Assembly (NCBI RefSeq): GCF_052425735.1
Contig: NC_135763.1
Location: 14,632,001 to 14,696,000, forward strand
Length of the DNA stretch: 64,000 bases
Reading direction: 5' to 3'
Origin: Oculina patagonica
Taxonomy: Eukaryota
Shown: one piece after another, positions 3,301 through 64,000 of the stretch
Numbering within the stretch: the stretch's first letter is position 1
How the letters are laid out: each line of letters starts with the position of its first letter
Position numbers and translations under genes: made by a program
Notes under the pieces: generated by a model
What the model was told of the DNA's origin: nothing
What the model saw: only the letters and a program-made list of their open reading frames with translations
Databases searched by the model: none

Positions 3301-6300
3301 ATAATAATCAGATTCTTAATCTAATAGGTGGTACAAAATTCTGGGCTAACAAAGAAAACCAAAGTGCAGTTCTTTAATGCCTATGTCCTCTCGCAACTGG
3401 CAACTCTTTATCAATACACCAAGGATGCTGAGGAGGAAAACAACAGTGATGAACATAAATCTGATCAAACAGTGCGGCAAAAAGTGCATGATCTGCTGCT
3501 GAAAATCTGTGGGTCATTTAAACTTGGAATTTGTTTTTCAAATACTGCGGGAGCATTTTCTACCAGGTACAGAATGTAAATATGTGTGTACATGTCCCGG
3601 GGGGGGGGGGGTACTCCCTATAATGGCCTATACGGGGAGGCTCCGCCCGAAAGGGGTACCTTTTTCAGGCTTCAGGTATACAAAAGGGTAGGGATTTCAC
3701 ACGTTTAAGTATATGAAAGGGTATGGAAATATGTCATTTGGCTATTTAACTCTTTCGCTGCGGTTGTCGAGAAAACTCGACATTTCATTTCGTGACTCTG
3801 AGTGCGGATGTCGAGTTTTCTCGACATGATAAACAATCCCAGATTTCCTTTCGAAACTGTCTCCAATAGGGACGCTATGATCAATAATTACTTCAGATAC
3901 CCTCTAGGAGAACTGGAAAGCGTGACGAGCACGATCTTTTGCCATTTGCATATAATGGCGGAGTATTATCGACAAATTCATGTTACACTGTTGCTGTTTA
4001 CGGCCAAAGGACATTTAAACATGGCATCGAATGAGAATTTTTCAATTGAGGAGTGCTTCGGAGAAGATTCTAACCGACTTTCGCCGAGAATATAACAGTT
4101 GTGGTTTACGAATCAAGTGATTTCAATGAACAGATTGAGTATCTGAGACGCGGCTGTTGCAAAACAATGGTTTCAACCTTCACGCTTGGGAAGGAAGCTA
4201 TCAGATGGCGAACGAAATTGCTGAAAGGACCAAAATGCAATGAATTTATGAAAAGGTTGCTTTTTACGATGTAGAATTATGTTAGGCACAATTCCTGAAA
4301 ATCTTAATTAAATTGCTTGAATAGAACGAAAGATATTGTTGAATATGATGCGTGACTGTGTGATTCAACGCACTGTGAAAAAAATGCAGCACTGCGGGGG
4401 AGTAAGGTCAACAGAAAAGTCAGCAGCGAAAGAGTTAAAAGGGCCTTTAATTAAAAATAATATTTCGAACAGACGCAATTTATGGCTGTATTATTTTAAT
4501 TTATTAAGCGCTACATAAAATTGACAAGAAAACATCCTATTTTAAGTCCATGCCATGTCTCTTAGGTATATGAAAGGGGTACCTTTTTCAGTTAAAGGTA
4601 TACAAAAGGGGTACAATTTCTGTCAAAAATGGTATAAAAGGGTAAGGGGTTAGAACTTGGGGCGGAGCCTCCCCGTATAAAACTTTTTGGAGTATCCCCC
4701 CCCCCCCCCCCGGTACATGAATGACTTGTTATGATTTTTTTCCTGTCCTGCCCCTGTCCCATTTCCCCTGTCCCCGTGCTTGGTGCCCTGTACCGTACAG
4801 AACCGTGCCGTGCTGTGCCGTCTTTATACTGTCTTGTACTGTACACAAAACTGTTGGTATCTAAATTAAAGTAATACATGTAATTTCTTTTATCATTGTC
4901 TATTTTAAATAAATAAAAAAATGTTTTCTCTAGGAGTAACAACCCAGTGTTGTTAAAGTTCCTTCAGAGTTTATCTTCAGTGACAACAGATGTACTCATC
5001 CAAGAACTAGTCATCACTGTGTTATCCTGCTGTCAAGATGTTGTGAGGCCTTTTCTCTCAAGCTTGACAGCAATATACGAGCCCAGACTTTCCATGCCGT
5101 GGATTGCAAATATGAACTTGGTTACAAAGGTGAGAAAATGATTATGCAAAGTGCAAGACACAAGAAATATCTAAGAGTAGCTTGAAATCAGTGATAATAC
5201 AATGTCAATTCTAAGTACTAAGCCTTGACGATGATGCAATAAAACCATTTCTAGCTAGGTTAAGTAACCATTACAATGACTCTTGTGTGGTGTGTGTCTG
5301 ATGAAGAATGCCAGTTGCAAGCCTAGCCATTGCTCCCTTGCTCTTAGGTTTTGTTCATAGGTAAGACTATTTACTCAGTGCCTCGACTTTTCACTCGGTC
5401 AAGTGAATTAAAAGGGTTCTTAGCCTGGTTTCCATAATTTATTATTATGATAGCAGATGATTGCAGTGGATCACAGACGGTCGCAAAATTGAAGAAATTT
5501 ACTGAACCATGTGATCGCAATGATCGCAGAGCGAACTGTTTCCATATGATTGCAGGCGATCGCAGAATTGTTGAATGATATGATTGATTATCTTAATGGA
5601 TCAACCCCAGGGGCCGGGGTACTTCAGCTTGTAAATGACAGTGAAGATCAAAGGATTTTTTGGGGTTTGAAATTTTTGATTCCGGGATTTTTGGGGGGTT
5701 GGAAAATTTGGCAAGTATTTTTTTGGGTGATTTGATTTAATTAGGGGATTTTTTTGGTATTGGAGGATCATTGCAATATTTTATTGACTGTGTTCCCATA
5801 TGACCGCAGCGATTGCAGACAATCACAGCCAATCACAAGCAATTGCAGATAGTCGCAGGGAAGAGAACTTGGTTCTATTTTCTGCAATTGTTTGCGACCG
5901 TCTGCGATCGACTGCAGATAATCGCAATGGATTGCAAACAGTGGACTAGAAATGGCATGTTTCGGCATAAGTGATTTGAGGCCCTGTTGTGGCAAAAAAT
6001 AAACTTGACCTTGTCCCACATCAGACCTGCTCCTTCCTTTCTGTTATAATATTGTGCTTTTCAATTGTGTAGATTTATGTGGTACTGCCACAGCCTTCAC
6101 AAATGCTGGAGAAATCTGGTTTGAAGATTACAGCAGAAATGCTACCATCCTTGATCAACATGGTAGTTCCAGTGGGAATTAGTAGGACAGGTTTAAATCA
6201 TGGAGTTCAGGTAATTCAATCATTTATTTTAGTTTAGTGTACCTTAAGAATGTCTTGGAACTGTAGGTAAAAAGTTTAAAAGAAAAATCCCAGCCAAATC

Positions 6301-9300
6301 CTGGCTAAAGCATTGTCAAAGCATGGTCAAAGCATGGCAAAAAACTGGCCAAATCCCTGCCAATTGGTCAAATCTCTGCCATTTTCTGGCAAATGCATGA
6401 CCCAAAACATGGCCAAGACATTGCTAAAGCCTGGCTGAAGCCTGGCCAAAGCCTGACCAAAGCCTGGCCAAAACCTGATCAAAGCCTGACCAAAGCCTGG
6501 CCAAAGCCTGATCAAAGCCTGACCAAAGCCTGGCCAAAGTGTGGCCAAAGCATTACCAAAACACAGCCAAAGCATGGCTAAAGCCTGACCAAAGCAAGGC
6601 CGAAGCATCGCCAAACCCTGACCAAAGCGTGGCTAAAGCCCGGGGGGGGGGGGGACTCCCATATTAAAGGGACGGGGATGCTCGTCGAAAACTTTGAAAA
6701 GAACCCCTAAAAGAGACCAATCTGGGCATGCTCAAGCTATTTTAGACCCCTAAAAGATACCAAAATTCTGAGAAAAAGAACTTATATTTGTATATTTCAT
6801 CGTGTGCAACCCTAAACGAGACCCTGACAGCTAAAAATATTGTCATTTTCTTGCATTTTCCCCAGAACACCCTAAGCGAGACCCAAAGTCCGAAATTTAT
6901 ACCCCTAAGCGAGACGACGAGCATCCCCGTCACTCTCATATGGAAGTCCCCCCCCCCCCCCGGGGGCTAAAGCGCAGCTAAAGCATGGCCAAAGCCTGAC
7001 CAATGCATGGCCAAAGCGGGACAAAATCCTGGCCAAAGCGCAGTGAAAGCATGACAAAAACTCACCTGACAAAATATTTGCTAATTCGCCAACAATTGTG
7101 AGTCGAACTCTCTGCAAATTTCTGGCCAAAGCATGGCCGAAGTCTGCCCACTGCATGGCCAAAGCTTGGCCAACGTCTGGCCAAAGCATGGCAAAAGCAT
7201 GGCCAAAGCATGGCCAAAGCATGACCAAATCCTGACCAAAGCCTGACCAAAGGGTGGCCAAAGCATGGCCAACCCTGACCAAAGTGCGGCCAAGCCTGAG
7301 AAAAGCGTAGCAAAGGCGCGCCCAAAGCACAGCCAAAGCGTGGCCAAAGCACGGCCAAAGCATAGCCAAAGCATGGCCAAAGCCTGACCAAAGCGCGGCT
7401 AAAGCGCAGCCAAAGCACGGCCAAAGCGTGGCCAAAGCACGGCCAAAGCGCGGCCAAAGCATGGCCAAAGCCTGACGAAAACATGGACTAAATGCGGCCA
7501 AATCCTGGCTTAAGCACCGTCAATGCATGGTCTAAGCCTGGCCAAAGCCTGGTCAAAGCCTGAACAACACATAGCCAAAGCTTGACAAAAGTCTGACCAA
7601 AGCACAGCCAAAGGGTGGCCAAAGCACAGCCAATGGCCGGGCAAAACGTAGCCAAAGCATGGCCAAACCGCGGCCAAAGCGTGCCCAAAGGGCAGCCAAA
7701 GCGCAGTCAAAGTGCAGCAAAAGCATGACCAAAACTCAGCAAAAGAATGGCCAAACCTGACCAAATATTTGCTAATTCGCCACCAATTGTGAGTCAAAAT
7801 CCTGCCAATTTCTGGCCAAAGCATGGCCAAAGTCTGCCCACTGCGTGGCCAAAGCTTGGCCAACGTCTGGCCAAAGCATGGCATAAGCATAGCCAAAGCA
7901 TGGCCAAATCCTGACCAAAGCCTGACCAAAGGGTGGCCAAAGCATGGCCAAAGCCTGACCAAAGTGCGGCCAAAGCCTAGCCTAAGCCTGGCCAAAACCT
8001 GACCAAAGCATGGCCAAAGCGTGGCCAAATCCTGACCAAAGCATGGCGAAAGCCTGACCAAAGCATAGCCAAAGCATGGACAAAGGATGGACTAAGCCTG
8101 GCCAAGGCACAGCCAAAGCCTGACCAAAGCATGGTCAAAGCGTGGCGAAAGAAAGCCTGACCAAAGCATGGCCTTAGCATGGCCAAAGCCTGACCAAAGC
8201 ATGGCCAAAGCGTGGCCAAATCCTGATCAAAGCATGGCCAAAGCCTTACCAAAGCACCGCCAAAGCATTGGCCAAAGGATAGACTAAGCCTGGCCAAGGC
8301 ATGGCCAAAGCCTGACCAAACCATGGCCAAAGCCTGACAAAAAAAGCATGGCCAAAGTGCGGCCAAAGCATCGCCAAAGCGCAGCCAACGCATGGCCAAA
8401 GCACAGCCAAAGCAAGGCCAAAGCACAGCCAAAGCATGGTCTAAGCCTGGTCAAAGCATGGCCAAAGCCTGACCAAAGCGTAGCCAAAGCATGGCCAAGC
8501 ATGGCTAAAGCCTGGCCAATGCGCAGCGAAGGATTGGCCAAAGTGCAGCCAAAGCATTGCCAAAGCCTGGTCAAACCCTCACCAAAGCATAGCCTAAGCA
8601 TTACAAAAGCCTGACCAAAGTGGGGCCAAAGCACAGCCAAAGCACAGCAAAAGTGTGGCCAAAGCGCAGCCAAAGCATGGCCAAAGCCTGACCAAAGCGT
8701 AGCCAAAGCATGACCAAGCATGGCTAAAGCCTGGCCAATGCGCAGCGAAGGATTGGCCAAAGTGCAGCCAAAGCATTGCCAAAGCCTGGCCAAACCCTCA
8801 CCAAAGCATAGCCTAAGCATTACAAAAGCCTGACCAAAGTGGGGCCAAAGCACAGCCAAAGCACAGCAAAAGTGTGGCCAAAGCGCAGCCAAAGCATGGC
8901 CAAAGCCTGACCAAAGCGTGGCCAAAGCACGGCGAAAGCACGGCAAAAGCATGACCTAAGCCTGGCCAAAGCATGGCCAAAGCCTTACCAAAGCATGGAC
9001 AAAACTTAACCAAAGCGTACCCAAAGCGCGCCCAAAACACAGCCAAAGCATGGCCAAAGCGTAGCCAAGGCATGGCCACAGCATGGCCAAAGCCTGAGCA
9101 AAGCTTAGCAAAGGCCTGCCCAAAGCACAGCCAAAGCACGGCCAAAGCACGCCCAAAGCATAGCCAAAGCATGGCGAAAGGATGAACTAAGCCTGGCCAA
9201 GGCACGGCCAAAGCCTGACCAAAGCATGGTCAAAGCGCGGCGAAAGCCTGACCAAAGCCTGACCAAAGCATGGCCTTAGCATGGCCAAAGCCTGACCAAA

Positions 9301-12300
9301 GTGTGGCCAAAGCATGGCCAAATCCTGATCAATGCATGGCCAAATCCTGACCAAAGCACCGCCAAAGCATGACCAAAGCATGGCCAAAGCCTGACCAAAG
9401 CATGGCCAAAGCGGGGCCAAAGCGTGGCCAAATCCTGATCAATGCATGGCCAAAGCCTGACCAAAGCACCGCCAAAGCATGACCAAAGGATGGACTAAGC
9501 CTGGCCAAGGCACTGCCAAAGCCTGACCAAACCATGGCCAAAGCCTGACAAAAGCAAGACCAAAGCGCAGCCAAAGCATGGCCTAAGCCTGGTCAAAGCA
9601 TGGCCTAAGCCTGACCAAAGCGTAGCCAAAGCATGGCAAAGCATGGCTAAAGCCTGACCAATGCATAGCAAAGGCGCGCCCAAAGTGCAGCCAAAGCGCG
9701 GCCAAAGCACGGCCAAAGCATAGCCAAAGCATGGCGAAAGCCTGACCAAAGCACCGCCAAAGCATGGCCAAAGGATGAACTAAGCCTGGCCAAGGCACGG
9801 CCAAAGCCTGACCAAAGCCTGAACAAAGCATGGCCTTAGCATGGCCAAAGCCTGACCAAAGCATGGCCAAAGCCTGACCAAAGCATGGCCAAAGCGTGGC
9901 CAAAGCGTGGCCAAATCCTGATCAATGCATGGCCAAAGCCTGACCAAACCATGGCCTAAGCCTGGTCAAAGCATGGCCAAAGCCTGACCAAAGCGTAGCC
10001 AAAGCATGGCCAAGCATGGCTAAAGCCTGACCAATGCACGGCGAAGGCTTGGCCAAAGTGCAGCCAAAGCATCGCCAAAGGCTGGACAAACCCTCACCAA
10101 AGCATAGCCTAAGCATGACAAAAGCCTGACCAAAGTGCGGCCAAAGCACAGCCAAAGCGCAGCCAAAGCATGGCCAAAGTGCAGCAAAAGTGTGGCCAAA
10201 GCGCAGCCAAAGCATGGCCAAAGTGCAGGAAAAGTGTGGCCAAAGCGCAGCCAAAGCATGACCTAAACCTGGCCAAAGCATGGCCAAAGCATGGCCAAAG
10301 CCTGACCAAAGCATGGACAAAACTTAACCAAAGCATACCCAAAGCGCACCCAAAACACAGCCAAAACGTGGCCAAAGCGTAGCCAAGGCATGGCCAAAGC
10401 CTGAGCAAAGCTTAGCAAAGGCGCGCCCAAAGCACAGCCAAAGCGCGGCCAAAGCACGGCCAAAGCATAGCCAAAGCATGGCCAAAGCCTGACCAAAGCG
10501 TAGCCAAAGCGCGGCCAAAGCACGGCCAAAGCGTGGCCAAAGAACAGCCAAAGTGCAGGCAAAGCATGACTAAAGCCTGACCAAAGCATGGCCAAAGGCA
10601 GTCAGAGAATGGAAAAACCTGGCCAAATCCCCACCAATTTTGGGTCAAATCTCTGCCAATTTCTGGCCAAAGCATTGCCATAGTCTGCACACTGCATGGC
10701 CAAAGCATGGCCAAATGCATGGCCAAATCACAACCCAATCCTTAACAAGTCCCAGCTAATTCCTGGCCAAATGCTGGCCTCATCCTAGAGAGCCAAATAC
10801 AAATGACAAATCTTGGCGAATTCCCATACAAATGTTCTGGCCAAATCCTGGCCAATTCCCAGCCAACTAATGGCCAAAACCCTGCCCATTCCTGGGGTCA
10901 ATTTAATAAAACAATTACGGTACATGTGTAATGAACAAGTGAAGCTTTTGTTTTTCTGAAGGCCTGGATCCACCACTGCATAGTAGAATCACTGAAAAAC
11001 TTGTGGCCCTCTATCCTAACAAATTATTCAATACTTGAAATACATCTTCTTTTTATTCTTATGTAGGCACAGTAGGTTACAAAACTATCAATTTAAATGC
11101 TTTGATGCCAAGAATCATTATTTTGAACTTGTAGCCCATTCTGGCCAAATCCCAGTCATAGTCCTGTTTAATCTCATTAATTAACCTTCTCTTAATAGCA
11201 TGCAAGTTCCCTAGTAAAACATACAACATTATCATTGGTAGTAGTGATCCTCAATAGAGCACAGAATGCTGCAGGATGGCTGGCTTTCAAAAGTGGAACA
11301 GTATTGCATCAAACGAACATTACTACACAGACAGAAGCACCATTACTGCAACAGTTTAGGGAAGGTGTTATCAAGGCACTACCTGATGTGACGACCATTA
11401 TCTCGCTGAGACAAAACCTTATTAAAGCAAAGACAGAGTCCCAGGAAGAAGGTTTGTTGTGGATATAATTCTACAATTTTACATCAAATGGAAAGATAAA
11501 AAGTCACTCTGAATCTTCAGTAGTGCTACAAGAAAAAACCCTCTAGCTTGGGGCTTAATTATCAAATTAAATCATTCTTCTTTAAACTCAGTTCACCCCT
11601 CCCTGTTCAAATAATTCTTATTTGAACAGTGGATAAATGTATAGTAAAGAAGTGATCCTTGTATTGAAATTAGAAATTGCAAGTAAAAAGGCCTGAAAAA
11701 AAATCAAAAAAATATATTCAGGGCTTCATTCCTGGCAATTTCTTTTATTGCAACTTTACTGCCAGGATCACTTCTTTACTTTTGTACCATTACTCAGTAC
11801 CTTTTGATTTATGGTTACTTTTATGTACAGAAGTGGCAAGTCCCACAGTTCTTCTTGCACAAAGTCTGAAAGTAATCCATGGGTTCCAGATGCTATGGCC
11901 ATCAGCCCTGTCTCGTGGTAACTTTGACCTGAGGAAATTGTTACCAGGACATCAAGAGATGACATTGCCACCCATTGCACAGCATTTGACTTTACAGATT
12001 CTACTTCAGGCCCCACTTGGGAGCCTTAAATGGTATCAGCAGGTCAGTTTTACCCTAGCCTGCAGAGCAGGCGTATTAAGTGAGCGCATTCGAATGCATT
12101 TTGATTGGGCGCCATCTTGGATTCTTATTGGGGAGAGGATTGGGAATAGGAGAAACGTGTCCTAGGGTAGTAGGAGTGAGGCAGAAAAGTAGGGGAGGGG
12201 GAGGGGAAGGAAAAATACGCTTGCCAAGCCTCTCTCTGTCCTCATCCAACATGGCGGCGAATCTACTCGATCGCGAACTAATACTACGTGCACCCACGGA

Positions 12301-24300: not shown

Positions 24301-27300
24301 AAAGATCGCTCAATTCAGAAAATGGAATTTTAATGGCAATCGATTTTGAAGCGTTTTTGGGGAACGCCTGCTTTGAAAAAAATATCATTGCATGTGTGTA
24401 ACTAGCGCACGTGCGGATAGCGTGTGTGCGTAACTAATTCAATAGATAAATCCCTGTTATGATGGTTGCAAAGTGCTGCAACCCATTGTAGTGCAAACTA
24501 AAATTGGGCGATTCCTTTTCATAACTGGCAAGTTTAGCCCTTTGATATAGGTCCCAGATTGTCGTTATCTGACGTGTTGTTTTCCATTTGGGAGGACTTC
24601 CCAAGTTGGGTTAAGGCCTATTTTATAATACTTATTCCAATTATTTTTCTTTATAATTTGTTGCTAGATAATACCAGAACACAAGCTGTGGTTTCACGTT
24701 TGGTTCAAGCTTACTGGGCACCATTGTGGGAGTGGCTTTCTGGTGATAGGGATGGAATTTTCAAAAACTCTGAGGTGAACAGCGAGTTAGTGATGTGTAC
24801 GATTTCTTTGACATTTTATTCAATGTTAAAAATTAAACAGTTTGTGAAATCGCTGAACTCACTTTGGACCAAATGAGAGACTAACGAAGCCCGCGTGGAA
24901 AGTGATTTGGCAAATAACTGTTAATTTAGACAAGTGCAGTTGTTTGTGAAATATTTAATTTTTAATGAAGTTTGAACGAGTAAGAAAAGAAGTACAGTAC
25001 TCAAAGAGCGCCCAACCGGTATCTGGGAGGCCATGGGTTCGATTCCCGCCGGGGACTCAGATTTTTTCTTTGTCCCATGCTCGTGTCATGTTGAACACTT
25101 CATCTTCATTATTTATTACCGAGCTTAAAATTTAACATCTTTAATATTTACTACAAACTTGATGATTTCGACATTGCTGATCCTAGCAGTATGCAGGACG
25201 CGTGTCACTTATCAACCTAGTAAATGGCCCAGCTCACAACGAGTCTCTCGTAGCTCAGTTGGTTAGAGCGCCCAACCGGTATCTGGGAGGCCATGGGTTC
25301 GATTCCCGTCGGGGACTCAGATTTTTTCTTTGTCCAATGCTCGTGTCATGTTAAACACTTCATCTTCATTATTCAGAGTATATTTCTGTTTTCTATTATA
25401 GGAGTTATGTATGGAGCTGCTTACTGCTCTCATTCACACAATGCAAAGAGGTTAGTTTTATAGGTGAATGATTCATTAGACGTTTTTGTCATACTGAGCA
25501 ATGTAAGAATGTTTATATGCTTGGCTTACTGGTCTCATTTGTTGTTTGAACACAAAGAGTATTTGGATAACGTGAAATTAAACTTTTTTGCACTGTACAA
25601 GGTTATAGAGTGTAACTTTTACATGCATTTAAAACGATTTTTAATTGCGTGTTGAAAGTAATTTGCGTTTGCTTTTGCTTGCATTACTACGCTAAGTAAT
25701 TGGTTAAAACAACTTGGCGCCACTTTCTCAACCAATCAAAATTAAAACCAGAACCAATCGTGCCTCGCTTACACACCTTTTTTCGTCGCTTCGTTCCGGC
25801 TACATATATTTACTTCGAGGTTTGATTGGTTAACTGGATTGTCTGTGTCCTTTGTGATTTGCCAAAGTGATAACTTACTTCCATAGTACATCTGTGTAAC
25901 AATTCTTTATTGCTCAGGTACCATTTATGTCATAAGATATGTGACAAGCCGATATTCTCGGTTTTTTTTTTCTGCTTGGGCTTCTTTTTTAGATGGCAGT
26001 CTCAGCGAAAGGCTCCAGGAACTTTTGATGAAAGCCTCTTTGTGGGACAGGTAGGAGCGTGCCTTCACATGCATACATTGAATTGTCTTGTATGCTTTTA
26101 TAATGCAGTTCTGTTAATTTTCTTTTGACGTTTTTGTGTTTTCAGCTACCAGTTGAGAATCTGTCACCAACTGGTAACAAGTCAGTGTCGTGACGTTTCT
26201 ACCAATCAGCAGAGAGTAGATGTCATGAGCAAATTCTGCTTTGCCTGTATGGAGTTCTTGTCAAGTGTTCTAGATGGAATAGGTAACATTCTTTTTCTTT
26301 TCCTTCCTCTCTGACCAACGTTTGTTAGGTTTACTGGTAGTGTTGGTAGGTTTGTTGCTGGTAAAGGCTGGTTTCTATGTAATTGATAAAGGTCCTAAAT
26401 TCTGGTGATTTAGTTTACCTAACTTGGCTTAAATGTACCAAACCTTTCCTGCGTAATTTCCGGCCCTGTTAAAAGCATATGCCGCAAAAGATGTTCAATC
26501 TGGGTTCAGCTTTTGAATGCCCTGCAATTTGTCTTGATCGCCACTGATTATTTTTAAAATGAGCCTTGAACTGAAAGACTGCATTTGACTGAAATACACC
26601 TATGGTTAGTGAGTGTGAGAATCTCGAATATGACAATTTACTGGGAATATTAGTATGACAGAAGGTTTGATGGTTGCTTGAATGATTTTAGGAAGCAAGG
26701 AAGATGATGAACCCGTGATAAAGGATACTTTGTGTCACATGGAATCGATTTGCAAGGTATGTGACAACATGATTTCTCATTACAGTGACAAAATCAGACA
26801 ATATCCACTGAAAGCAAGAATTTCTCACAACTGATTTTTGGATTCTACATTGCAGAATAGAATAACTACATGTTATATTGATGTTGATGTTTTCATCTTT
26901 CTTGTTTAGAATGCTGGTGCCATCAGTGCCATTGATGAACGTTGCATTTCAACGTGGAACAGCTTTGTAACTAATTGTTTAAGGTATTTTATGAAATAGC
27001 TTATCTTGATCAGTGTGAAAAGAATAGTTATGGCATAACCATTGGTGGAGGTGCTTAAAAGTTTAGCCATAAAGAATGTAAGAACTTTCAAAGAATAATT
27101 CCGTTTCTGTCACATACTCTGATAAGAATTTAACGCATCGTTTACACTGGAATTATTGAGAAAATTCCTATTCCCAAAGCTCGGAAATGTCTTATACAGT
27201 TCTTACCCGCTTATAAGAACCCATTTTTTCAAATTTAGCCTAAACGGGTTCTTATGTAAATGGTGCTTAGTGGAATTTTAGGCTACGCAGGTTCTTAAAT

Positions 27301-30300: not shown

Positions 30301-33300
30301 AATGAAACTATCACTAACTGTACTTGGTGTGTGGGGGCCTAAAATTTTGAAAAAAAAGGCCGGGGGGCAAAAAAAAACGAAATAAAAGTAAATCTTTGTG
30401 TTGGCTGTCGGGCCCTTGGTCCGCTCGCCGGTAGCTACGGAGATTTGATCAGACTAAAATTACTGCAGTTTAAAAAGAATTTTAGGGGATTCTGTTCAAT
30501 TTATTTAAGTCTCATCCAAACAAACTTGCAAAGACTTTTAAAAGGAAAATCTTCTTGTGTTAAGGATTCTCGAAATTAAAAAGAATTTAAACTGGTGTAA
30601 GAATGGAATGAAATTCGAAATTTTTTGAATAATAGGAGGCAATAGAAACACTACGAAACTGCATAACAGAGTGGAAATGCGTTTGTTTAATTTGTATTTC
30701 CCGATTTTATCTTTTCACAGACCTTTTCTGTGGGGCCCAGCCGCTGCACAGCATCACCAAACCGCCAAGAGCCTGGGACCCTCCCTATGGCAACAACCAA
30801 GTGTCAGTGAAGTGCTGGAACAAATGGATGCCAGCAAAATGTATCAGTCAGCGGTGGCATTTCCACAGAGCAGGCTACTGCAGGTTTGTGAAGGTTTTGA
30901 TGCATTTCCCGCCGGCTGCAACTCTGTGGAGGTGTTACACATGATACCGGGGATGACTTTCATACGGCTGCGAGTTCAACCCGGTCCCCGTATCGGTCGA
31001 GATTTTCTTACCTTTGGTACACGACGAACGCCCACTCGGTATGAAATCATTCTCCTGGTAGACTGGAACGGGTAACATGCGTAGTTTTAATCACTCCAAG
31101 ATGGCGTCGCGTGAGCCGCGTTGGATGAAGGTTGAAGACAAAAAAAACTTTGAAGTGTCTCTTAATGTAAACGCGGTCTGAACTCGCCTTGCTACAAGAT
31201 ATAAAATGTAATGGAATCGACTAATTTACCGAGGACGTAGATACACATGCTCCAAAAACCATCTATTATACAGTTAACATTTAGAACTAAGGATGTATTA
31301 TTTTTAATTTCTCTTTTAGCCACAAGTCCAGAGTGAGCTTTCTCGCCAGACACTCCAAGATGTTTACGACCCTTGTTTCCTCCTGCCGTTATTCAGCTGC
31401 CTTTTAGCTCCAAGTTAGTATTGACTATTAATAGTGTGTTCAGGCGGTCAGGTGGTTGACCGGTACGATAATCAATGTTATTTTAATAATCAAGGCGCGC
31501 AATGTCGTCAGATGAGTGTGATTGTATAAAACCCAGTAGTAGTCAGAATGTCTCCATCCTTACTAAGTTACGTCTAAGCTGACATTTGAGTTCGACTATC
31601 GCCTTTACACTACCGGTCTTGTTGGACTAGTGGCCTTGTACAGGCAACTTGAATGAAATAGCAATCAACCTATCAATCAACTTATCAACCTAGTAAATGG
31701 CCTAGCTCACAGCGAGTCTCACGTAGCTCAGTTGGTTAGAGCGCCCAACCGGTATCTGGGAGGCCATGGGTTCGATTCCCGTCGGGGACTCAGATTTTTT
31801 CTTTTTTTTTTCTTTGTCCCACGCGCGTGTCATGTAGAATAATTTCTTCACTATTTATCACCGAGCTTAAAATCTACCATCTTTATTATTTACTACAAAT
31901 TTGATGATTTCGACATTGCTGATCCTAGCAGTATGCAGGACGCGTGTCACTTATCAACCTAGTAAATGGCCTAGCTCACAGCGAGTCTCGCGTAGCTCAG
32001 TTGGTTAGAGCGCCTAACCGGTATCTGGGAGGCCATGGGTTCGATTCCCGTCGGGGACTCAGATTTTTTCTTTGTCCCATGCTCGTGTCATGTAGAATAA
32101 TTTCTTCACTATTTATCACCGAGCTTAAAATCTACCATCTTTATTATTTACTAAATATTTGTTTTGTTTGCTAGATTATCAAGTGGACTGTCGAAAGTTC
32201 CTGGAGCAAGGCTGCTTGAGTTTCGCAGTAGCCTCGTTGTCCTCACGTGATGTGCATGTGCGGCAAGCGGGATATCACTTGCTTAGCAGATACATGATGC
32301 ATCTTGAAGGGGCCAGATTCAAAGAGAGAAAACAGGTCAGTGCAATATGCCAGCCAGTGTGTCCGAGTATACAGGCAGTTAGACTAACCGGCATACAATT
32401 AAGAGATTTGTTCACTTTAGAAAAGCGCATCTTGTTTCAAGCTTTCAGGTATTGGGTAAGGTGATGTGTAAAAATGAACGAAAGGTCCCAGGAGATTGAA
32501 AACAGAGAAATGAGGGAAAAAACGTGACGGGGTGAGGAAGATGCTCACCCTTTCTCTCTTCATCCCGCTCTCCTTGTTTCCTGCTTGCTTTTGTTTTCCG
32601 TTCACTGGCTTTCACTTTTACCCCGCATCCTGAGGACCTGAACATAAGAAGCTAAATTAATACACGAGGATACACGAGTACTTCTTGTCACTGAGTAAAT
32701 AGGTGTAATAACTTGCTTGACTGATATTTTTTCTTTCTCAGATTTTCCATCTGTTGACATGTTTGAAGAATGGTATTACAGAAGCGAATTGCCGCATATC
32801 AAGTTTGATGGTGTGCTTTATAGCTCGTGTGGCCTACATTCTATTAAAACCAGGTTAGATCTGATTTGAAACTTGTCGTTACCACCCTTCCAATGGCCTA
32901 GGTATGCTTTTTAGCTTCTCTTGTGCGAAAAAATGATAACTGTACCCCTGTAATTCTTTGTTTACTCTCCGCAGAGCATCCTTTCTACATAATGATGAAC
33001 AGCTTCCTACTTCAGAGACCTGCTTTGGATCTCAGAGATTTACCACTGTTTTTCACAATGTTCAATAGTAGCACCATGCAGGTAAAACTTGACTCTAGCT
33101 ATCACAAAATTTTTTCTAAAATAGCCCTTTGCTAACGGTCACCTGGCACAAAATCCGCCATGCTGGAGGACAAGCTACGCTCTAGGCTATTCAAAACAAA
33201 GGAAAGCAAGCTGACTTGTTTAAGTCGCTTTGTTTTGGATGTCTCTCCAACAAGGTGTTATTTTGTAGCATGCGACCGTTTGCTGCATTGGGCCCATCTG

Positions 33301-36300
33301 CAATACGTGCACAGGAAATATTGTAGTCTCCCAGGACACGATGAGGTTTCCCTTTTTACCGACTAATAGAGCAGTTTTCAATTGAGTGTCGTAAAACCAA
33401 AACCAAAGTAATTACTCTGGCCAATCACAAAGGACACAGGCAATCCAGTGAACCAATCAAAACTCGAAGCAAATACATGTAGCTGGCACGAAGCGCGGGA
33501 AGCCGTGCGCGAGCGAGTCACGATTGGTTTTGGTTTTAGTTCTGATTGACTGAGAAAGTGGCGCGAGATTTTTAAGCCAATCAATAAGCGTAGTAATGCA
33601 AAACCAAAGCAAACGCAATTTACTTTCGACACTCAAGTGAAAACCGGTCTAAACGCTGCATTGGTTTGTCTCCTAGCACGTGACCGAGCGTTCCTGGATG
33701 CTACAGTTGCTGGTGGATGGAATGAAGGACAGTCCTGATTACTATCTGTATAAACGGCGTCACGTGATTGAATTAGCCCTGAGTTATCACGATTCACCGG
33801 TCAGCGATCATCACTCTCAGGTTTGAATACCTCATGTGGTAAAACATCAAACATAACCCTTGAAAGTGTACTGCAGATTGCAGTGACCAAATTGCGTTCC
33901 GAAGTGATCAGTATTTAATTTCTTGCAAATATCAAGAATGAATACTTTCGTGGCTGGTCTGACACGCATGTTTCGTCTCCGCCAAGAGACTCATCAGAGA
34001 CCTTTCGGTGAAAGCTAACTCGTCGAACATCGCGTTTGAAGTCCCGCTAGCGTCGAAATGATGGTGCAATCTGGCCTTACATCGCGTAACCATTCCCAAT
34101 TGCGTAACGTGTAAATTGTTATATCAAGAATATAGAAAATAATCAACTAGGAGTAGTGTACCACCACCATATTCTCGAGCGAACGTACAAAGACATGTAT
34201 GGCATTTAGGAAAAGAATTGTTATTTTTAAGGTTAAGAGTTTAATGGTTAATTAAGTACTTAATGCTTTTGTTTGTTTGTGTAGAACTTAGTTACTCAAT
34301 TGTTGCTATCAGCTCTGAAGATTCATCCAGCAGCTTATGATCTTACTAAAAACTACGGCATTGTAGCCTGGATCCACTCCTTGTGTTACAAGAGGTTAGT
34401 TAACTGACTCACTAAATGCCTTTGGTTTTTGTAACAAGTTTGTCGTGCACTTTTCATCGCGATTGAAACAAGTTGTTTCTTAGAGCACTTTTCTGTTACC
34501 ACCAAACTTTCTACTTAAGTTTTGCGTTTGTGAAGCTCTGTAACGAGTCTTTTTGTTGCTGTCGTTGTTGTTTTTTGCTTCCTTTTACTAGTCCTGAAAG
34601 AACTGGTATAAGTCTGAACTTGCTTCAAATCCTTTGGTTTACACTACATGCTACCGACAAGAGCAGCAAAGACTTGGATGGGGAAGAAAAATCTGTTCGT
34701 CTACCTCCAAACGTAGCTCAAGAGTGCGCTTTAGTCTGCTGGACTCTTCTTGAGCAACTCAGGTAAACAAACTACTGTCAGAGACTGTGACTACAAAAAG
34801 TGACAAAAGTGTTGACACATTGTCATTTTAGCCTCCTTTTATTGCAAAACAATATTTTTTCACCCCTTCCCCCATATCAATTCTGTAGTTTGTTTCTGGA
34901 AGTCCTTTGCTGCGATCATGTAAAATTGGACGTGGGGAGGAGGGGGGGGGGGTACTTTGTTGTAGTGAAATTGAAAAACTTCAATGAGAAGTCAATGTGT
35001 CAACTACATTTGTCCAACATGGTAATTCCTCACTCAGTTCAGTTCATCTAGTAACCACATACTGTCTTTATTTTCCAGATCTTGCCCAAATGTGACTGAT
35101 TCCTGTAGCTATTTCAAACTACTGGCATCCGTCATCACTTACCTAGCAGCCAATGAGCAGCCTTTTGGCTTGTCATGTGACCGTATTTTGAGCCTGTTAG
35201 GTTTGTGGTGTGCGGCATTTGACGAGACTTTGACACTGAATCAACTTCTGTCTTCACTAAACTTGAATGAAATGCTGAGCAGTAACGTCAAAACTGGTTC
35301 ACCATCCGAGCCTGAGTATACCAAGCTGAAGACAGAAAGCTTGTGTTCGTTGTTAGAAATTCGCACATCATGGCAGCCGTCGGGCACAGAAACAAACCAG
35401 ACTTCATTACAACAGACAATTCTTGTTGTCTTGCACTTTGGACTGATGTGCTGCCGTGATTCATCCTTGGTTAACAAGCTTGATATTGATTGTTCTTCAA
35501 GCAGTGAAAGCCAAACACCAATTTGCCTGCTTGCACTTCTACGTTGGTTTAGAAGATGTCTAGTAAAAGGCCGTGCACTTCAAGATCGTCTTGTAACAGA
35601 GAGCTCTTCCTCTGAAGTTAAACTTCTCTTACAGCTGTACCAGGTTGGTCCGTCCAACAAGTCGAGCTGCTCGCTACAACAAACTGAACACGACAAACGC
35701 GTTGAGAACTCTGGCTTTGCAGTGACAAGGGAGCTCAACACCATTTGTCTGGTCATACTTGCTGCTGCTCAGCGAGTTAAGCGGGAGGGCGATGAAAAAG
35801 GATCACTGCAGCCAGCGGTCTGCCAGCTTATCTCTAAGGAGCCATATGTTGAGGTTATCACTAAAGGACTGGAGAAAGTGATTCTTCCTTTGCTACCTGA
35901 CCCCTGTAGCGACTTCAAGGAGAGTTGTCATCAGGATCAAGGCGAGTATAATCTTTATCTTGGAAAACAAGAACGTCTGTAAAGTACTCTAAAGTGTTCT
36001 GTCGAGAAATGTCAACCCTTGGCTTCAAAATTGTCTCAAAATTTCATACGGTTTCACATTTTTTCAGCCTTGGACTTGACTGAATTACTGGTAGAACACC
36101 TTCTATTTGCACTCTCTTAATGTGATTACTTTAGAAAATTAAACTTAGTAGGGGATTAGCAGATTAAAAGCCCACATCTCCCATATTAAGTTTGTGTGAC
36201 AGCCTGATCAGACTGAGTTTGCTTTATTTGAAATAGATAGGAGGGGAGATTTTCCTGCCTGGATTTTTGACCATCCAATAAAAAACACAGATCCATACGT

Positions 36301-46337: not shown

Positions 46338-46537
46338 CCTGTCTTTGAAAAAAAATAAATTAGTCTACCGGTTGGAGAAACCACGAGAATCAACCATCCG
46401 CCATGTTGGTTTGTTTTCAATCCCAGTCTCCTTTCGGTCACGTCACAAAATACGAAGCCTGGTTGATTTTGCTTCGTCGACAGTTTTCAATTTGCTTGTG
46501 GCTGTAAAACAAGTTTTTGATGTCTTTCAGCGTAAAA
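46338..46537. promoter_or_regulatory. Bidirectional promoter region shared by CTU1 and ERCC8
   Basis: Divergent ATGs only about 200 bp apart; contains YY1-like CCGCCATGTT (46398-46407) and a CRE/E-box-like GGTCACGTCA (46436-46445). Confidence 0.7.
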
Positions 46538-47746
46538 ATGTTTCATTCCTTGTACATGAGAGAACAAGCGACACTTTCTGCCTATCTGTTCTCCCAAGCT
46601 GAACGAACGAAACGAGTGCGATCCATAAAGCTGAGTCAAAATGGGGAAATGGAACAAGTCCACAAATCTGGGATAAACTGCGTTGACATCGACACAGGCG
46701 AGGGAAAATATCTTTTGTCTTCCGGTTCAAATGGACGAATAACCGTTCATGATATAGAGGAATGTTTCTTTCGTGACACGTTCAAATGCATGTCAGTCGC
46801 TACAGTGGAAAGAACGTTTAAAGACAGCCACAAACACAGTGTGGAAACTGTTCAATGGTACCCAAATGACACAGGCATGTTTTTATCTAGTTCGGTTGAC
46901 TCGACACTCAAAGTATGGGATACAAACGCACTTGAAGTTGTCGAGAACTTTCGGCTCGAAGGGATGGTCTACCATCATCAAATGCCAAAGAATGCCACGA
47001 AACATTGCCTGGTGGCGACAGCATGCGAGGACTCAAGAGTGTATCTTTGTGATTTGAAATCAGGTTCTGCGATTCATATTTTAAAGGGACATTCCAAGGC
47101 AGTTGTTTCTGTGGCCTGGTCACCAAGAAATGAATATTTTTTAGCTACTGGTAGTCGCGACAATAAAGTGCTTCTGTGGGATGTGCGAAAAGCTGTTGGG
47201 AGTCTCCTCTCATTAGATCAACACAACGGCAAAGGCGGGGCCAGATCATCAACAATAAGTACAGCTCATAATGGTCATGTGAACGGTATTTCCTTCTCAC
47301 ATGATGGATTGCACTTATTGACTTATGGAACAGATGATCGTTTAAGGTTGTGGGATACATTCACTGGAAAGAACACCCTTGTTAATTTCGGCGGCGTCCA
47401 CAATCCCAGTCGGAAGGCAGTTAAGCTTTGCCTATCCAGTGGAACTACAGAAGAGGTGGCATTTGTTCCTTCTGGTAGTAATATTGAAGTTTATGACCTT
47501 GTTACAGGAAGGCATGTAGCCACTCTTGGTGGTCATTACAATAATGTAAACTGCTGCACATTTCATCAGCATTTTCAAGCTCTCTTCAGTGGATCAAATG
47601 ATACAAGTCTTTTAGTATGGCTTCCTAAAATGAATCGGACTGGAGATATAAAGGCAGGTCAGTCAACAGAGGCTGTCATTAGTGCTGCAGATAAAGTTGA
47701 TAATCCTTATCAGGACTCATGGAGCAGCGATGAAGAGGAAACATGA
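46538..47746 (+). CDS. ERCC8: DNA excision repair protein ERCC-8 (CSA), WD40 repeat protein, single coding exon
   Basis: Uninterrupted ORF; likely ATG at 46538 (MFHSLYMREQ, matching the N-terminus of vertebrate CSA as recalled). Motifs: HKSGINCVDID..EGKYLLS, HKHSVETVQWYPNDTGMFLSSS.D.TLKVWDTN, HCLVA, LCDLKSGS, AHNGHVNG, LTYGTDDRLRLW, GHYNNVNCC, and C-terminal DSWSSDEEE. Confidence 0.96.
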   Translation: MFHSLYMREQATLSAYLFSQAERTKRVRSIKLSQNGEMEQVHKSGINCVDIDTGEGKYLLSSGSNGRITVHDIEECFFRDTFKCMSVATVERTFKDSHKHSVETVQWYPNDTGMFLSSSVDSTLKVWDTNALEVVENFRLEGMVYHHQMPKNATKHCLVATACEDSRVYLCDLKSGSAIHILKGHSKAVVSVAWSPRNEYFLATGSRDNKVLLWDVRKAVGSLLSLDQHNGKGGARSSTISTAHNGHVNGISFSHDGLHLLTYGTDDRLRLWDTFTGKNTLVNFGGVHNPSRKAVKLCLSSGTTEEVAFVPSGSNIEVYDLVTGRHVATLGGHYNNVNCCTFHQHFQALFSGSNDTSLLVWLPKMNRTGDIKAGQSTEAVISAADKVDNPYQDSWSSDEEET

Positions 47747-53751: not shown

Positions 53752-54494
53752 TAAAAGTACTGAGATATTTGCAACTCAACACATTATATGAATAACAATT
53801 ATAAAAATAGCTTCTTCCAAAAAAAATATACCTTACTGCTGACTACAGTTTCTACCCCATTTCTGACCAAAATGGTTAAACGACTTAAAATCCATTCGCC
53901 CATACTTTCGCTCCTATCAAAATCATCTAAAATCTCTACCCGGTCTATTTTAGAGCAAAACAACTTGAAAACCAAACCTTTTGGCGCCACACATACCTGT
54001 AAAGATTATGTAAGGAAGCACTCACCCTCCTGGTGTAATTTCATTTCTTAAGTTCGTTGTGCGAACAAGTTTTAAAAAAGAAAGAGAAATGTCCGCGCGC
54101 GAACTGCGCGCAACAACCTCGTTCCCAGATCTCTTTTCTTCCCGAGGTTGCATACGGGACAGAAAGATTACTTTACGAAAATAATCTCTCTGTTCCACTG
54201 GCTGTAAATGCCGCACTCCAATTTGCAGGAACGACATGATTGGCTCAAAATATTGCGGCTGTCCTTTGTAATACAGAAAAAAGGAAACCTTACCTTTACT
54301 CAGGCAGGCATTAAAGACATAAAACAATAATGATGACGTCAATGAAATTCACAGAAGGCCGCTCAATTAATTATTTCACTGCTTGTTGCTTTTAGAAAGA
54401 CCATGTCGTAGGGGCAAAATGCTCTGTGTTGTGTTTTAATAATTTCTGATTGTGTGAAAGAAAAGCTTTTCTAGACTGCAGTTAGTTTCACAAA

Positions 54495-57400
54495 ATGAGA
54501 ATTTTTCTTTCGGAAATTTTCGCGGCGGGTTTGTTGCTATTATTGTCAGGCCCTTATGAAGGTAAAGGCGAGCATGGTGTCAAAGATGTGAAAATTGGAG
54601 TTTTGCTGCCAATGACCGGTTACTGGCCGATTGGCAAAACGTCTGCGTCCGCTATTACTATCGCAGTGGATAAAATAAACAAGGACCCCACGCTGCTACT
54701 GGGCTATAACATAAGTTTCATGTGGAATGATTCCATGTGCTTGGCCGCCGAAGGACTTAACCAGGCCGTGGAGTTTCGAATCTCCGGAGTTGACGCCATT
54801 ATAGGAGACGGCTGTGACATTATTTGTGAACCGGCTGCTATTTTAGCGGCGTCCTGGAACCTGCCCATGATCTCCTGGGGCTGCGAATCGAGTAAGTTGT
54901 CAGAGAAGAGCATTTACCAAACGTTCGCCAGGACAGTGGGATCATTCTCCAAGATGGGCGGTCTCTTCATGTCGGTGCTCGGCTACTTCAAGTGGAAAAG
55001 TATCGGGATCATTGCGTCAACAGAGAGCATATGGCAGCTGGCAATGAGTGGTCTGATGAAGGTGTTTTTGGAGAATGATATCAATATTCGTTATATTCAC
55101 ACGCTCAATCCGGGGCACGTGTTGGTAACAGAGAGAGAGGAGTACAAAAGCATGTTGGCGCTCGCTAAGGAAACTGCTCGAAGTAAGTCAACCTTAACAT
55201 TATTGCCAAAATGTTTCAATTTCTTCCGTAAATATAAATGTAAATGTCTTTATTTCGCTCATTAAAATACATAACAAACGTTACAGTACAAATCGTAAAA
55301 ATCGCCCAAATTATTTACATATAACTTACTAAGATGTCATACTACATTGTTAAATGGCTAAATTATATTTGAACCTTATTCTGTCAAAATAACTATTCTT
55401 AAAACGTTCCGTTCCAAACTTAGTCTTTTCTAAAAAAAACCTGGCTTTTATGATGTTTTAATTGCTGTCGTTTCAAATTTTCTTTATAGTCGATCACAGC
55501 GTTGTTACCTTTCATAATCAATCGTTAATATAACAGAAAATAATTTTAACTTAACAACCCTCGCTAGTAGCTCGATTTTACTTGGAAAACTCGAAACATG
55601 CATGGTGGCTTGTTTAGCCTCGCCAGTAAACCGGTTTGTTAAAAATGACCGTGCATGAGTGTTTCCTAAGCCTGCATACAGTCGTTTCCTTTTTTTTTTT
55701 TTTAGTTAGAAAATTTGGCAGGGCCACCCAGCGGATCATTTCGGTGAATATCTTTTAAAGAAGGCTTGTTATTCCTTCGGATTCAGTTCTTTGGTGAAAT
55801 GTCACCTCGAACCTTCATATTATGGGATTTCCTCGTTGGGCCCCTAATTTGGGCAAGCAAGTACTGATTTGAATGACTAAGTAAATTTAAATAAAATTAA
55901 TAAAAAATCTAAACAATCTTAAGTTCCTCTCTAAGGACCTGGAATGTCAGCCTATTTTATATCAGCGTGCCTGCATTAAAGGAAAAGTTTTAATAGGGAA
56001 TGAAAGGAAAACTCGCGAAGCCGACTCCTCCCCCCGATTTTACACATTTTTCTTTCTGAATTAACTCTTTGATACCGCTTTCTTGTTACAAAAATTTTAA
56101 TTTATGGTTTCATTTTCAAAATTGATTAACAAACGCCCTTACTGCCATGAGCTTTTTCTCTAATCGGAAAGCCGGTAGAAAACACGCGCGGAAAAAATGG
56201 TTGTCTTACTCACAGACTATGCTTGCATTGCAGTCTTTATAATGCTGTGTTACGGCGGTGATATGCGTGCATTAATGCTCTACGCCTACGATCTGGGCAT
56301 GCTCAATGGGGACTACGCTTTTCTGACTGTCAATCTGCTGCCGTCCGCTGCCATTGGCAACAACACGTTCATGGGCAATGACGGCAGAGATGCTGAGGCC
56401 GCCCTGGCGTTCAGAGGGATCTTGAGCATACATGTTAGAGAACCGACCACAGATCTATGGAGATTATTCACGAAAGATGTGCGACAGAAAATGAACGATT
56501 ATCCGTTCCACATTCAGCTGGATGACCAGGAGAAGGTACTTCTTAATGGGGGTGGGGAGGGTGGGGAGAAAAGGAGGACAACCAACGGGAGGAAATTAAA
56601 AGTACACCGGACCGGGATTTTGTAGAGAGGACTATGAACGAGTGAAAGTTACAGGCGAAAAATGGTTTTTCATAGTAGATGTTAAGCGTGAGATAAATAG
56701 GCAAATAGATTTATTGTTTAGTTAAACGGAAACGTATTTTTGTTGTCGCTCTCTTTTCCGTCTTTTTGTGGTTAGAGCTCTAGACTGCAGATCGAGCGAT
56801 GTGGGTTCGAGCCCTAGCCGGGGTCATCATGTTGTGTTCTTGGGCAAAATTCTCACAGTGTCTCTCTCCACCCAGTAGTATAAATAGATTCTGGCGAATT
56901 GTCGGGACAATCTGACAGAACGTTGAGGAGCAACCTGTAATAAACTAGCATCCCATCCAGGGGGAGTAGCAGTACTTCTATCCGCTACACGCGATAAAAT
57001 TCGGACTTAAGCGTCGAAAGCTACGAACCACTTAAGAGGCTTTGCATTTAAAACGCAGTTTCAATATTTGAATTCAGCGGTAGAGAAGGGAACAAAAAGC
57101 TGAAAGACTGATCGACTTGTTATTATGATTATTTAATTTGTCGTCGAACGAAGTTTTGAAATCGTTTCCGGGGTGTTCTTCGTGTTTTGTAGGTTGAAGT
57201 GTACGCTGGAGCCATATACGATGCCATTTACCTGTATGCCATTGCACTGAATGAAACTTTAGCTGCTGGAGGGGACAAGAAAGATGGGCGAGCCATAGTG
57301 CACAGAATGCTAAACAAGGAGTTTGAAGGTCTGTGACCCTGTAGCAATAGCGATAATATTCTTTTACAGTAAACAATTCACCGTGCCGTCAAAGTGCACT

Positions 57401-62765: not shown

Positions 62766-62953
62766 AATAGACCATTTAATTTTACTGATAGACCTGATAT
62801 GCGGCCATTTTGAATTCTATTGTCTCAAATAGTTATTATGGGATGTCCAGGGGCAAATACATAGTTTACATTTGCCCACCTGAACATCCAATAATGTCCT
62901 TCAGAACAATAGATATCATAATGGCCGCCGTTAGTATCGATAAAAAGATGTAT
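62766..62953. mobile_element. Palindromic MITE-like element whose right arm seeds the 122-bp array
   Basis: GCGGCCATTTTGAATTCTATTG..TTATGGGATG..GGGCAAAT mirrors ATTTGCCC..CATCCAATAA..CAATAGATATCATAATGGCCGC. Confidence 0.7.
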
Positions 62954-63610
62954 TTCTTTGCGTGGAAGGTAAATTCGAGTCCCAAGTACTCCCTGAAATC
63001 CCTGAACATCCAATAATGACCTTCAGAACAATAGATATCATAATGGCCGCCGTTAGTGTCGATAAAAAGATGTATTTCTTTGCGTGGAAGGTAAATTCGA
63101 GTCCCAAGTACTCCCTGAAATCCCTGAACATCCAATAATGACCTTCAGAACAATAGATATCATAATGGCCGCCGTTAGTATCGATAAAAAGATGTATTTC
63201 TTTGCGTGGAAGGTAAATTCGAGTCCCAAGTACTCCCTGAAATTGCTGAACATCCAATAATGCCCTTCAGAACAATAGATATCATAATGGCCGCCGTTAG
63301 TGTCGATAAAAAGATGTATTTCTTTGCGTGGAAGGTAAATTCGAGTCCCAAGTACTCCCTGAAATTGCTGAACATCCAATAATGCCCTTCAGAACAATAG
63401 ATATCATAATGGCCGCCGTTAGTGTCGATAAAAAGATGTATTTCTTTGCGTGGAAGGTAAATTCGAGTCCCAAGTACTCCCTGAAATCCCTGAACATCCA
63501 ATAATGACCTTCAGAACAATAGATATCATAATGGCCGCCGTTAGTGTCGATAAAAAGATGTATTCCTTTGCGTCGAAGGTAAATTCGAGTCCCAAGTACT
63601 CCCTGAAATT
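62879..63610. repeat. Tandem array of six 122-bp units
   Basis: Unit starts at 62879, 63001, 63123, 63245, 63367 and 63489; copies are near-identical with no spacers. Confidence 0.97.
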
Positions 63611-64000
63611 GCTTTAAATCAGCACAACAGGCCTTCACTTATAGAAAGTAAACCCACTTCCGTAGTGTCACGTGACTGCAACGTAGTCGAATCAAATAAT
63701 ACCAGCGAGACCTATGCGCCTGGATCACATATGATGTATCGCCTTGGATAGTCAGGACCTTACTAAGGGTTTCAATAATTTTTTCTTTTCAAAAACTGAC
63801 GTTTTAATTCTGTTGGTTTTGTATTTCTTTCAGCGAATCAAACAAAAATACAACCAATCGCCCATGCAATTTTCCAAATCCAACTTTCAATCTAATTTGA
63901 TTTTTTTTAAACTTTGTCTTGTCAAACTTAAAATTACGTTAGAGAATTATACCTGTATAAAAGTTCTATTTTCAGTGGTGACGCTAAAAGGCAGTATTCC

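Follow-up and report, generated by a model that had tools for sequence, protein, structure and literature searches.

An intronic hammerhead motif in Oculina patagonica belongs to a putative non-LTR retrozyme family with insertion ends at the predicted cleavage site

Non-long-terminal-repeat (non-LTR) retrozymes are short tandem repeats with type I hammerhead ribozymes and a G+C content below 50%, which lack LTRs, a primer-binding site and a polypurine tract and are flanked by target duplications of more than 4 bp (PMC7229834). Sixteen families, with over 6000 hammerhead motifs between them, have been described in Acropora millepora (PMC7229834). According to the published account, metazoan retrozymes contain no motif that betrays a helper element, and the literature favours Penelope-like elements (PLEs) in that role. 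Animal type I hammerheads whose helix III is short and palindromic are, according to the published view, mostly active in pairs, for example within tandem transcripts (PMC4209133), and the double-hammerhead model cited there is that of Forster et al. (1988). Here we describe a hammerhead motif on the minus strand of a 64,000-nt stretch of the Oculina patagonica genome (NC_135763.1, positions 14,632,001 to 14,696,000; hereafter the window), where it lies within an intron of an URB1 orthologue, together with the repeat family to which it belongs. Type I hammerhead retrozymes have already been published for corals and are common in this genome, in which at least 71 Rfam-significant hammerheads belong to other families. 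The family described here is a putative new non-LTR retrozyme family, and thus a known kind of element.

A search of the genome with a 203-nt query (33929-34131) returned 121 matches with 90-99% identity, and an exact family 13-mer likewise occurs 121 times. The matches define a repeat family of about 120 copies or more, in two period classes of 181 and 184 nt. Its units, each with one type I hammerhead, are found in long tandem arrays (up to 21 units; contigs C5, C3 and C2), in short tandem arrays (2-6 units), and in at least 50 scattered insertions, dozens of them single-copy, with target duplications of 5-13 bp. The earlier note on this DNA had proposed a genome-wide search for tandem copies, which the arrays of period 181/184 nt now answer. 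The unit has no LTR, primer-binding site, polypurine tract or coding capacity, the longest stop-free stretch in an artificial trimer being 91 amino acids.

The family is similar to the metazoan non-LTR retrozymes of Cervera & de la Pena (2020, PMC7229834), in that both are protein-free, carry one type I hammerhead per unit, range from monomers to many-unit arrays, reside in stony-coral hosts, and have a G+C content below 50% and target duplications longer than 4 bp. The 181/184-nt unit falls within the published range of 170-400 nt, and within the 150-450 bp or so that define the class, and is shorter than the 220-245-nt retrozyme of Acropora millepora; it is unrelated in sequence to the published coral retrozyme, as far as the two were compared. 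The hammerhead sequence of the family is absent from the supplementary text of PMC7229834 and from the papers searched. Circular RNA has been demonstrated for the published families, whereas the present family is known from genomic and contig sequence.

The motif in the window reads, on the sense (minus) strand from 34002 to 33956, GGUCU-CUGAUGA-GUCUC-uuggcg-GAGAC-GAAA-CAUGCGUGUC^AGACC. The conserved core, the 5-bp stems I and II and the short stem III reported in the earlier note are all present. Specifically, the core is complete (C3 U4 G5 A6 N7 G8 A9, G12 A13 A14, A15.1-U16.1, C17), with CUGAUGA at 33997-33991, GAAA at 33974-33971 and GUC^A at 33963-33960, and the predicted cut bond lies between 33961 (C17) and 33960 (A1.1). 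Helix I comprises 5 bp and is open, which gives type I topology; helix II comprises 5 bp, starts with G10.1-C11.1 and is capped by a 6-nt loop; helix III comprises 3 bp (A15.1-U16.1, C-G, A-U) and a UGCG loop. The self-complementarity previously noticed in stem III is borne out by the 10-nt stretch ACAUGCGUGU, which pairs with itself throughout when two G-U pairs are included. Our own descriptor, composed of the core and the three helices, finds the motif at this one site across the two strands of the 64-kb window and nowhere in 200 dinucleotide-preserving shuffles. Helix I could formally be extended by pairing CUUUC (34014-34010) with GAAAG (33949-33945), but the extension was dropped, as a local hairpin competes with it and no covariation was seen.

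The segment 33940-34120 is very probably a single, young, 5′-truncated non-LTR retrozyme copy, inserted antisense in the URB1 intron with an 11-bp target duplication. Homology of the other copies to the query begins at positions 9-13 and ends at 192-196. Family homology therefore stops at the inner edges of the pair of ATATCAAGAAT repeats, identifying the 11-mer, which had been recognized before at 33929-33939 and 34121-34131 and is indeed present, as a target-site duplication outside the unit. The spacing of the direct repeat is 192 nt and differs from the family period, and the last three nucleotides of its left copy (AAT) also fit the family sequence, constituting a microhomology. In RNA sense, the insert ends at 33940 (3′) and 34120 (5′). 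It has the usual 3′ end (positions 12-192 of the query, q12-192) and lacks about 24 nt at the 5′ end relative to copies that start at the cut site. The flanks of the intron contain 33% G+C, as against 48.6% for the insert. The copy differs from the family majority at only two of 181 positions (34090 and 34037; 98.9% identity), indicating that it is young. The earlier reading of the bracketed unit as a solo retrozyme monomer, here assigned a target-site duplication, is thus strongly supported by the 121 family matches, the arrays and the duplications at sister loci.

We compared 56 independent loci, from which overlapping fetches and obvious segmental duplicates had been removed; q denotes the position in the query and sense the ribozyme-carrying strand. 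The sense 3′ end falls at q9-18 in 48 of the 56 loci, within a stretch rich in A/T that lies 15-24 nt downstream of the cut site, and often shows a microhomology of a few nucleotides to the target; the family sense 3′ tail is ...CCACGAAAGUAUU(CAUU). The sense 5′ end coincides exactly with q32 (33960, the nucleotide 3′ of the predicted cut) in 12 of the 56 loci and lies within 1 nt of it in 15, the former count having a binomial P of 3e-16 under a uniform spread over 184 positions. The 5′ ends are otherwise variable, with scattered truncations as in 5′-truncated retrocopies. Most loci show target duplications of 5-13 bp, for example AAGTGATATTTA, ATCTGCAATGT and AGTGGTAA. A full-length insertion comprises N whole units and a terminal redundancy of about 20 nt, which rebuilds a complete hammerhead on the 3′ side. 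A 3′ boundary at the cut site itself was found in none of the 56 loci.

Because the 5′ ends pile up on the predicted cut bond, we infer in vivo cutting by the hammerhead and an RNA-mediated spread of the family. The fixed internal start, together with the lack of a 3′ boundary at the cut site, speaks against a linear monomer simply being copied from its 3′ end. We propose that the arrays are transcribed and that the transcripts would be cut by hammerheads paired through their palindromic helix III. The reverse transcriptase of another element would then start at a nicked target, priming on the A/U-rich stretch that lies 15-24 nt beyond the cut, and copy one or more units from a template that may be multimeric, circular, or re-joined or jumped between. 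Copying would finish by run-off at the self-cleaved 5′ end of the RNA or by an earlier stop, as proposed for the copy in the window. We lean towards this mechanism in its details.

Insertion scars of this kind are cheap, sequence-only evidence of in vivo cutting and define both ends of the copied RNA, and mapping them relative to the cut site is an aspect that specialists may find useful. The scars might even document for the first time, in genomic sequence, the use of a weak animal hammerhead of the dimer type in retrotransposition, with a self-cleaved template 5′ end, an internal A/U-rich start and a redundancy of about 20 nt, a suggestion that we make tentatively and regard as doubtful. If it is true, it would suggest that copying runs off the end of linear, self-cleaved RNA, with template jumping between units or re-circularization, and does not simply follow a closed circle in rolling-circle fashion, and it would provide a sequence handle for locating the helper reverse transcriptase. 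Both the copying mechanism and the search for the helper are directly testable in the coral, whose assembly contains 14 large chromosome-sized contigs. The window itself is of small import: it adds one more young, probably harmless intronic copy, in an essential ribosome-biogenesis gene.

Several individual loci deserve mention. In six independent insertions (L020, L027, L039, L081, L090 and L094), the sense 5′ end is located at unit positions 40-44, 8-12 nt upstream of the cut site and just 3′ of helix II, which may reflect a stop of the reverse transcriptase. A 32-nt piece is present in three copies at L042 (G000:C9:22094057-22094332) and in one copy at L030 (G000:C9:22129606-22129818), each ending at the cut-site nucleotide. 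At L079/L080 (G000:C2:8713732-8716992) and L082 (G000:C4, ~16386000), two separate family copies have been hit at the same spot by a second transposon, with duplication of TGGTGCAATC (unit positions 134-144); one of these inserts is about 3.1 kb long with 20-bp terminal inverted repeats CAGGCATAACTAATCGATGA, and the other about 180 bp.

An alternative, already raised in the earlier note, is that the copies are fragments of the pseudo-LTR of an autonomous PLE and that no separate non-autonomous element exists. PLEs abound in the genome, where candidate GIY-YIG sites number at least 860 and many of them form inverted pairs; PLE insertions are 5′-truncated partial tandems (PMC8557442); and a 2026 preprint relates vertebrate retrozymes to PLE pseudo-LTRs. 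Furthermore, one PLE-linked pair of loci (L053/L055, ~1119, + strand) contains a minimal hammerhead whose helix III is palindromic (CTGATGA GGCC..GGCC GAAAC AGCTGTC), situated about 380 nt upstream of a GIY-YIG match. The motif described here shares with the minimal PLE hammerheads (Cervera & de la Pena 2014, PMC4209133) a helix I that is open and 4-5 bp long, G10.1-C11.1, a short palindromic helix III suggesting dimer action, low scores with standard models, and mass production in invertebrate genomes that hold many PLEs. Unlike them, it lies outside a PLE flanking repeat, has a helix II of 5 bp instead of 6-8 bp, has no extra unpaired nucleotide after position 9, and keeps a looped 3-bp helix III. 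The copies in the 56 loci are bounded directly by target duplications, with no reverse transcriptase or GIY-YIG sequence seen alongside and no adjacent PLE gene at any of them, and an inverted partner piece, as is typical of PLEs, is present at one locus only. The unit also shows no significant similarity to 30 sampled PLE loci of four or five families (best E = 0.64). We therefore give the pseudo-LTR explanation very little credence and retain that of a separate retrozyme family.

Spread as ordinary satellite DNA, by excised circles or segmental duplication and with the hammerhead as a relic, would account for the long arrays and for loci that are segmental duplicates of one another (L030/L042, L037/L043 and L045/L046). 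It would also account for the state of the ribozyme in the arrays. Among 102 aligned units, 40 from scattered or short copies and 62 from long arrays, 40 of the 62 long-array units have core defects (G12>A, G5>A or similar), so that core and helices are intact in 22; in the scattered or short copies, by contrast, they are intact in 34 of 40. The 47-mer in the window is the commonest form among the scattered copies and recurs identically in 19 others. The fixed 3′ end, the variable 5′ truncation and the 5-13-bp duplications are scars of target-primed reverse transcription, and the ends lying exactly on the predicted cut bond have no explanation at the DNA level. Taken together, these data make a purely DNA-level origin very unlikely and favour RNA-mediated spread of a retrozyme.

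The satellite-like hammerhead repeats known from other animals offer a further comparison. Newt satellite 2 and Schistosoma Sm-alpha are likewise repeats arranged in tandem, a few hundred nucleotides long, with a helix III too weak to act alone, and are transcribed into self-cleaving multimers; they differ from the present family in sequence and host phylum. The present family has scattered copies with target duplications and cut-site ends, on which the classical newt and Schistosoma descriptions are silent.

A pattern scan of public metagenomes identified 14 contigs (Ga0126343 and Ga0126342) with a related family of about 80% identity and the same fixed 3′ end. In nine long alignments, hammerhead positions outside the search pattern are 90% identical to the copy in the window, compared with 78% for the rest of the unit, and recurrent changes in the hammerhead are confined to loop 2 and the last pair of helix II. 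Family sequence was also found in RNA-like runs of three organisms, together with a joint at which the sequence goes back by 184 nt, the mark of a tandem or circular arrangement; the summed contig depth of the unit in these runs is 30-100 times that of the URB1 exons. The core-dead variant G12>A (33974, C>T on the + strand) makes up 62% and 77% of contig depth in the RNA-like runs X10 and X9, respectively; its share is 26% among the assembled units and, in a DNA run from another species, 11.5% of depth.

The predicted folding energies (Table 1) bear on how the ribozyme could act. The dimer action suggested in the earlier note fits them, with a predicted -33.1 kcal/mol for the double hammerhead versus -17.2 kcal/mol for two monomers. 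The same note's statement that any antisense or read-through transcript would be cut finds no support in these predictions, in which the helix III hairpin has +1.0 kcal/mol and the active fold -8.6 kcal/mol, against -11.6 kcal/mol for the competing fold. With its weak helix III and competing fold, a lone copy would be a poor self-cleaver that needs a second family RNA in trans, and cutting of an antisense transcript of the lone copy is accordingly predicted to be unlikely. For the published coral retrozyme a single motif suffices for efficient cleavage; the present hammerhead should, according to these predictions, need pairing, as do amphibian and PLE variants. When the 61-nt stretch was folded as a single strand, z was 0.28 and the hammerhead fold was not recovered; stability is not used here as support.

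Several observations weigh against the retrozyme explanation. The active monomer fold lies above the minimum energy, with a 7-bp alternative helix in competition. The Rfam model Hammerhead_1 (RF00163, clan CL00010), proposed as a check in the earlier note, aligns in full (model positions 1-45) but with only 19.6 bits (E = 0.049), below the gathering score of 34 bits. An Rfam scan at that threshold found no hammerhead in the window, and a permissive scan alone recovered the motif. The low score stems mainly from helices I and III, and scores of 36-52 bits occur among other hammerhead families in this genome; judged by its sequence the motif is genuine, yet it is no textbook high-scoring hammerhead. 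Within the genome, scattered copies diverge from the majority by 1.5% in the hammerhead and 1.1% in the rest of the unit; such a lack of extra conservation is expected from neutral decay after insertion. In the metagenome relatives, the excess conservation of the hammerhead has a nominal P of 1.7e-5, which is overstated owing to shared ancestry and to loci picked for an exact core. The runs were read at contig level, where RNA ends, strand and circularity are invisible. The 184-nt joint is also present in a DNA run, in which the unit stands at about 1200-1700 times single-copy depth, and DNA carry-over of such a high-copy repeat could lie behind its depth in the RNA-like runs. Finally, a helper sought in the 30 GIY-YIG loci with 1.5 kb of flank on each side yielded nothing similar to the unit, a result that does not amount to exclusion.

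The host gene is URB1, as proposed before, and the domain matches bear this out: an URB1/NPA1 orthologue on the + strand has Npa1 (PF11707) matches at 389-799 and 4917-5138 and a NopRA1 (PF16201) match at 32129-32461 (+), and the exon just upstream of the intron (33677-33820) matches NopRA1 positions 124-169 with 47.8 bits (E = 1.6e-12). Contigs from three RNA-like runs, of three organisms, skip exactly 464 nt from 33820 to 34285, confirming the intron at 33821-34284; it is real and is spliced normally with the insert in place. The left junction is confirmed in an independent data set by one contig of run X10, which extends from exon sequence across the left flank of the intron and 16 nt into the insert. 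An empty orthologous site was sought in another species, in DNA run X18, in which, at 88% likeness, the exons are covered and the intron flanks are not.

The copy in the window is probably locally inert: it has one cut site only, and thus cannot release unit-length RNA, and the strand with the ribozyme is absent from the URB1 pre-mRNA. That the antisense orientation protects URB1 is a reasonable supposition. Domestication as an intronic ribozyme that regulates URB1, or trims read-through from a convergent CTU1-like gene, has in its favour the intact motif and the position of that gene, which converges on the ribozyme strand from about 10 kb away. Conserved intronic hammerheads are known in amniotes (mentioned in PMC7229834). 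However, the copy is young, being nearly identical to the family majority, and shows no sign of local selection; it belongs to a set of over 50 similar insertions, poor folding is predicted for a lone copy, and the intron is spliced normally in three runs, which renders domestication extremely improbable. A chance resemblance to a hammerhead, for which the subthreshold Rfam score and the unremarkable 61-nt fold might be quoted, is refuted in practice by the family data, given the absence of the motif from 200 shuffles, the identical 47-mer in 19 other scattered copies, its conservation in the relative family of about 80% identity, and the coincidence of insertion ends with the cut site.

Table 1. 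Features of the locus and predicted folding energies of the hammerhead
Feature	Position or value	Strand	Basis
URB1 host intron, GT..AG, 464 nt	33821..34284	+	Splice joint in runs X10, X9 and X12; splits NopRA1 domain
Left target-site duplication, 11 bp ATATCAAGAAT	33929..33939	.	Direct repeat; family homology stops at inner edge
One unit of the putative retrozyme family, 181 nt, 48.6% G+C	33940..34120	-	Own-genome matches, end mapping
Type I hammerhead ribozyme motif	33956..34002	-	Rfam RF00163 full-model alignment, own descriptor scan
Right target-site duplication, 11 bp ATATCAAGAAT	34121..34131	.	Direct repeat; family homology stops at inner edge
Active fold, single 47-nt motif	-8.6 kcal/mol		Predicted
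Competing fold, single motif (GUCUCUG with CGGAGAC)	-11.6 kcal/mol		Predicted
3-bp helix III hairpin alone	+1.0 kcal/mol		Predicted
Palindrome duplex, two copies	-12.5 kcal/mol		Predicted
Full double hammerhead	-33.1 kcal/mol		Predicted
Two monomer active folds, summed	-17.2 kcal/mol		Predicted
Dimer minimum free energy	-36.9 kcal/mol		Predicted

The CTU1 neighbour named in the earlier note is recovered in part. A CTU1-like gene does converge with URB1 on the minus strand: its exons 45305-45120 and 44855-44595 resemble the PP-loop region of CTU1/Ncs6, with the SGGK|DS motif split by an intron. The database match of these exons, to the archaeal U34-tRNA thiolase 6scy, is weak (E = 0.053), and a Pfam ATP_bind_3 search returned no match genome-wide or on the two exons.

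Other features of the window were noted in passing. Three near-identical tRNA-like Rfam matches of 36-41 bits, in URB1 introns on the + strand (25247-25313, 31722-31784 and 31991-32053), look like copies of a tRNA-derived short interspersed nuclear element. A long run of degenerate reading frames of the 'KAWPKHGQS' type at ~6300-10700 (+) suggests a tandem repeat inside an URB1 intron. A further tandem repeat, with a period of about 122 nt, occupies ~62900-63750 (+) and contains the reading frame KDVFLCVEGKFESQVLPEI... seven times. In addition, a single-exon gene at 46508-47743 (+) encodes a 412-residue WD40 protein, and an exon at 54486-55262 (+) encodes an ANF_receptor ligand-binding domain.

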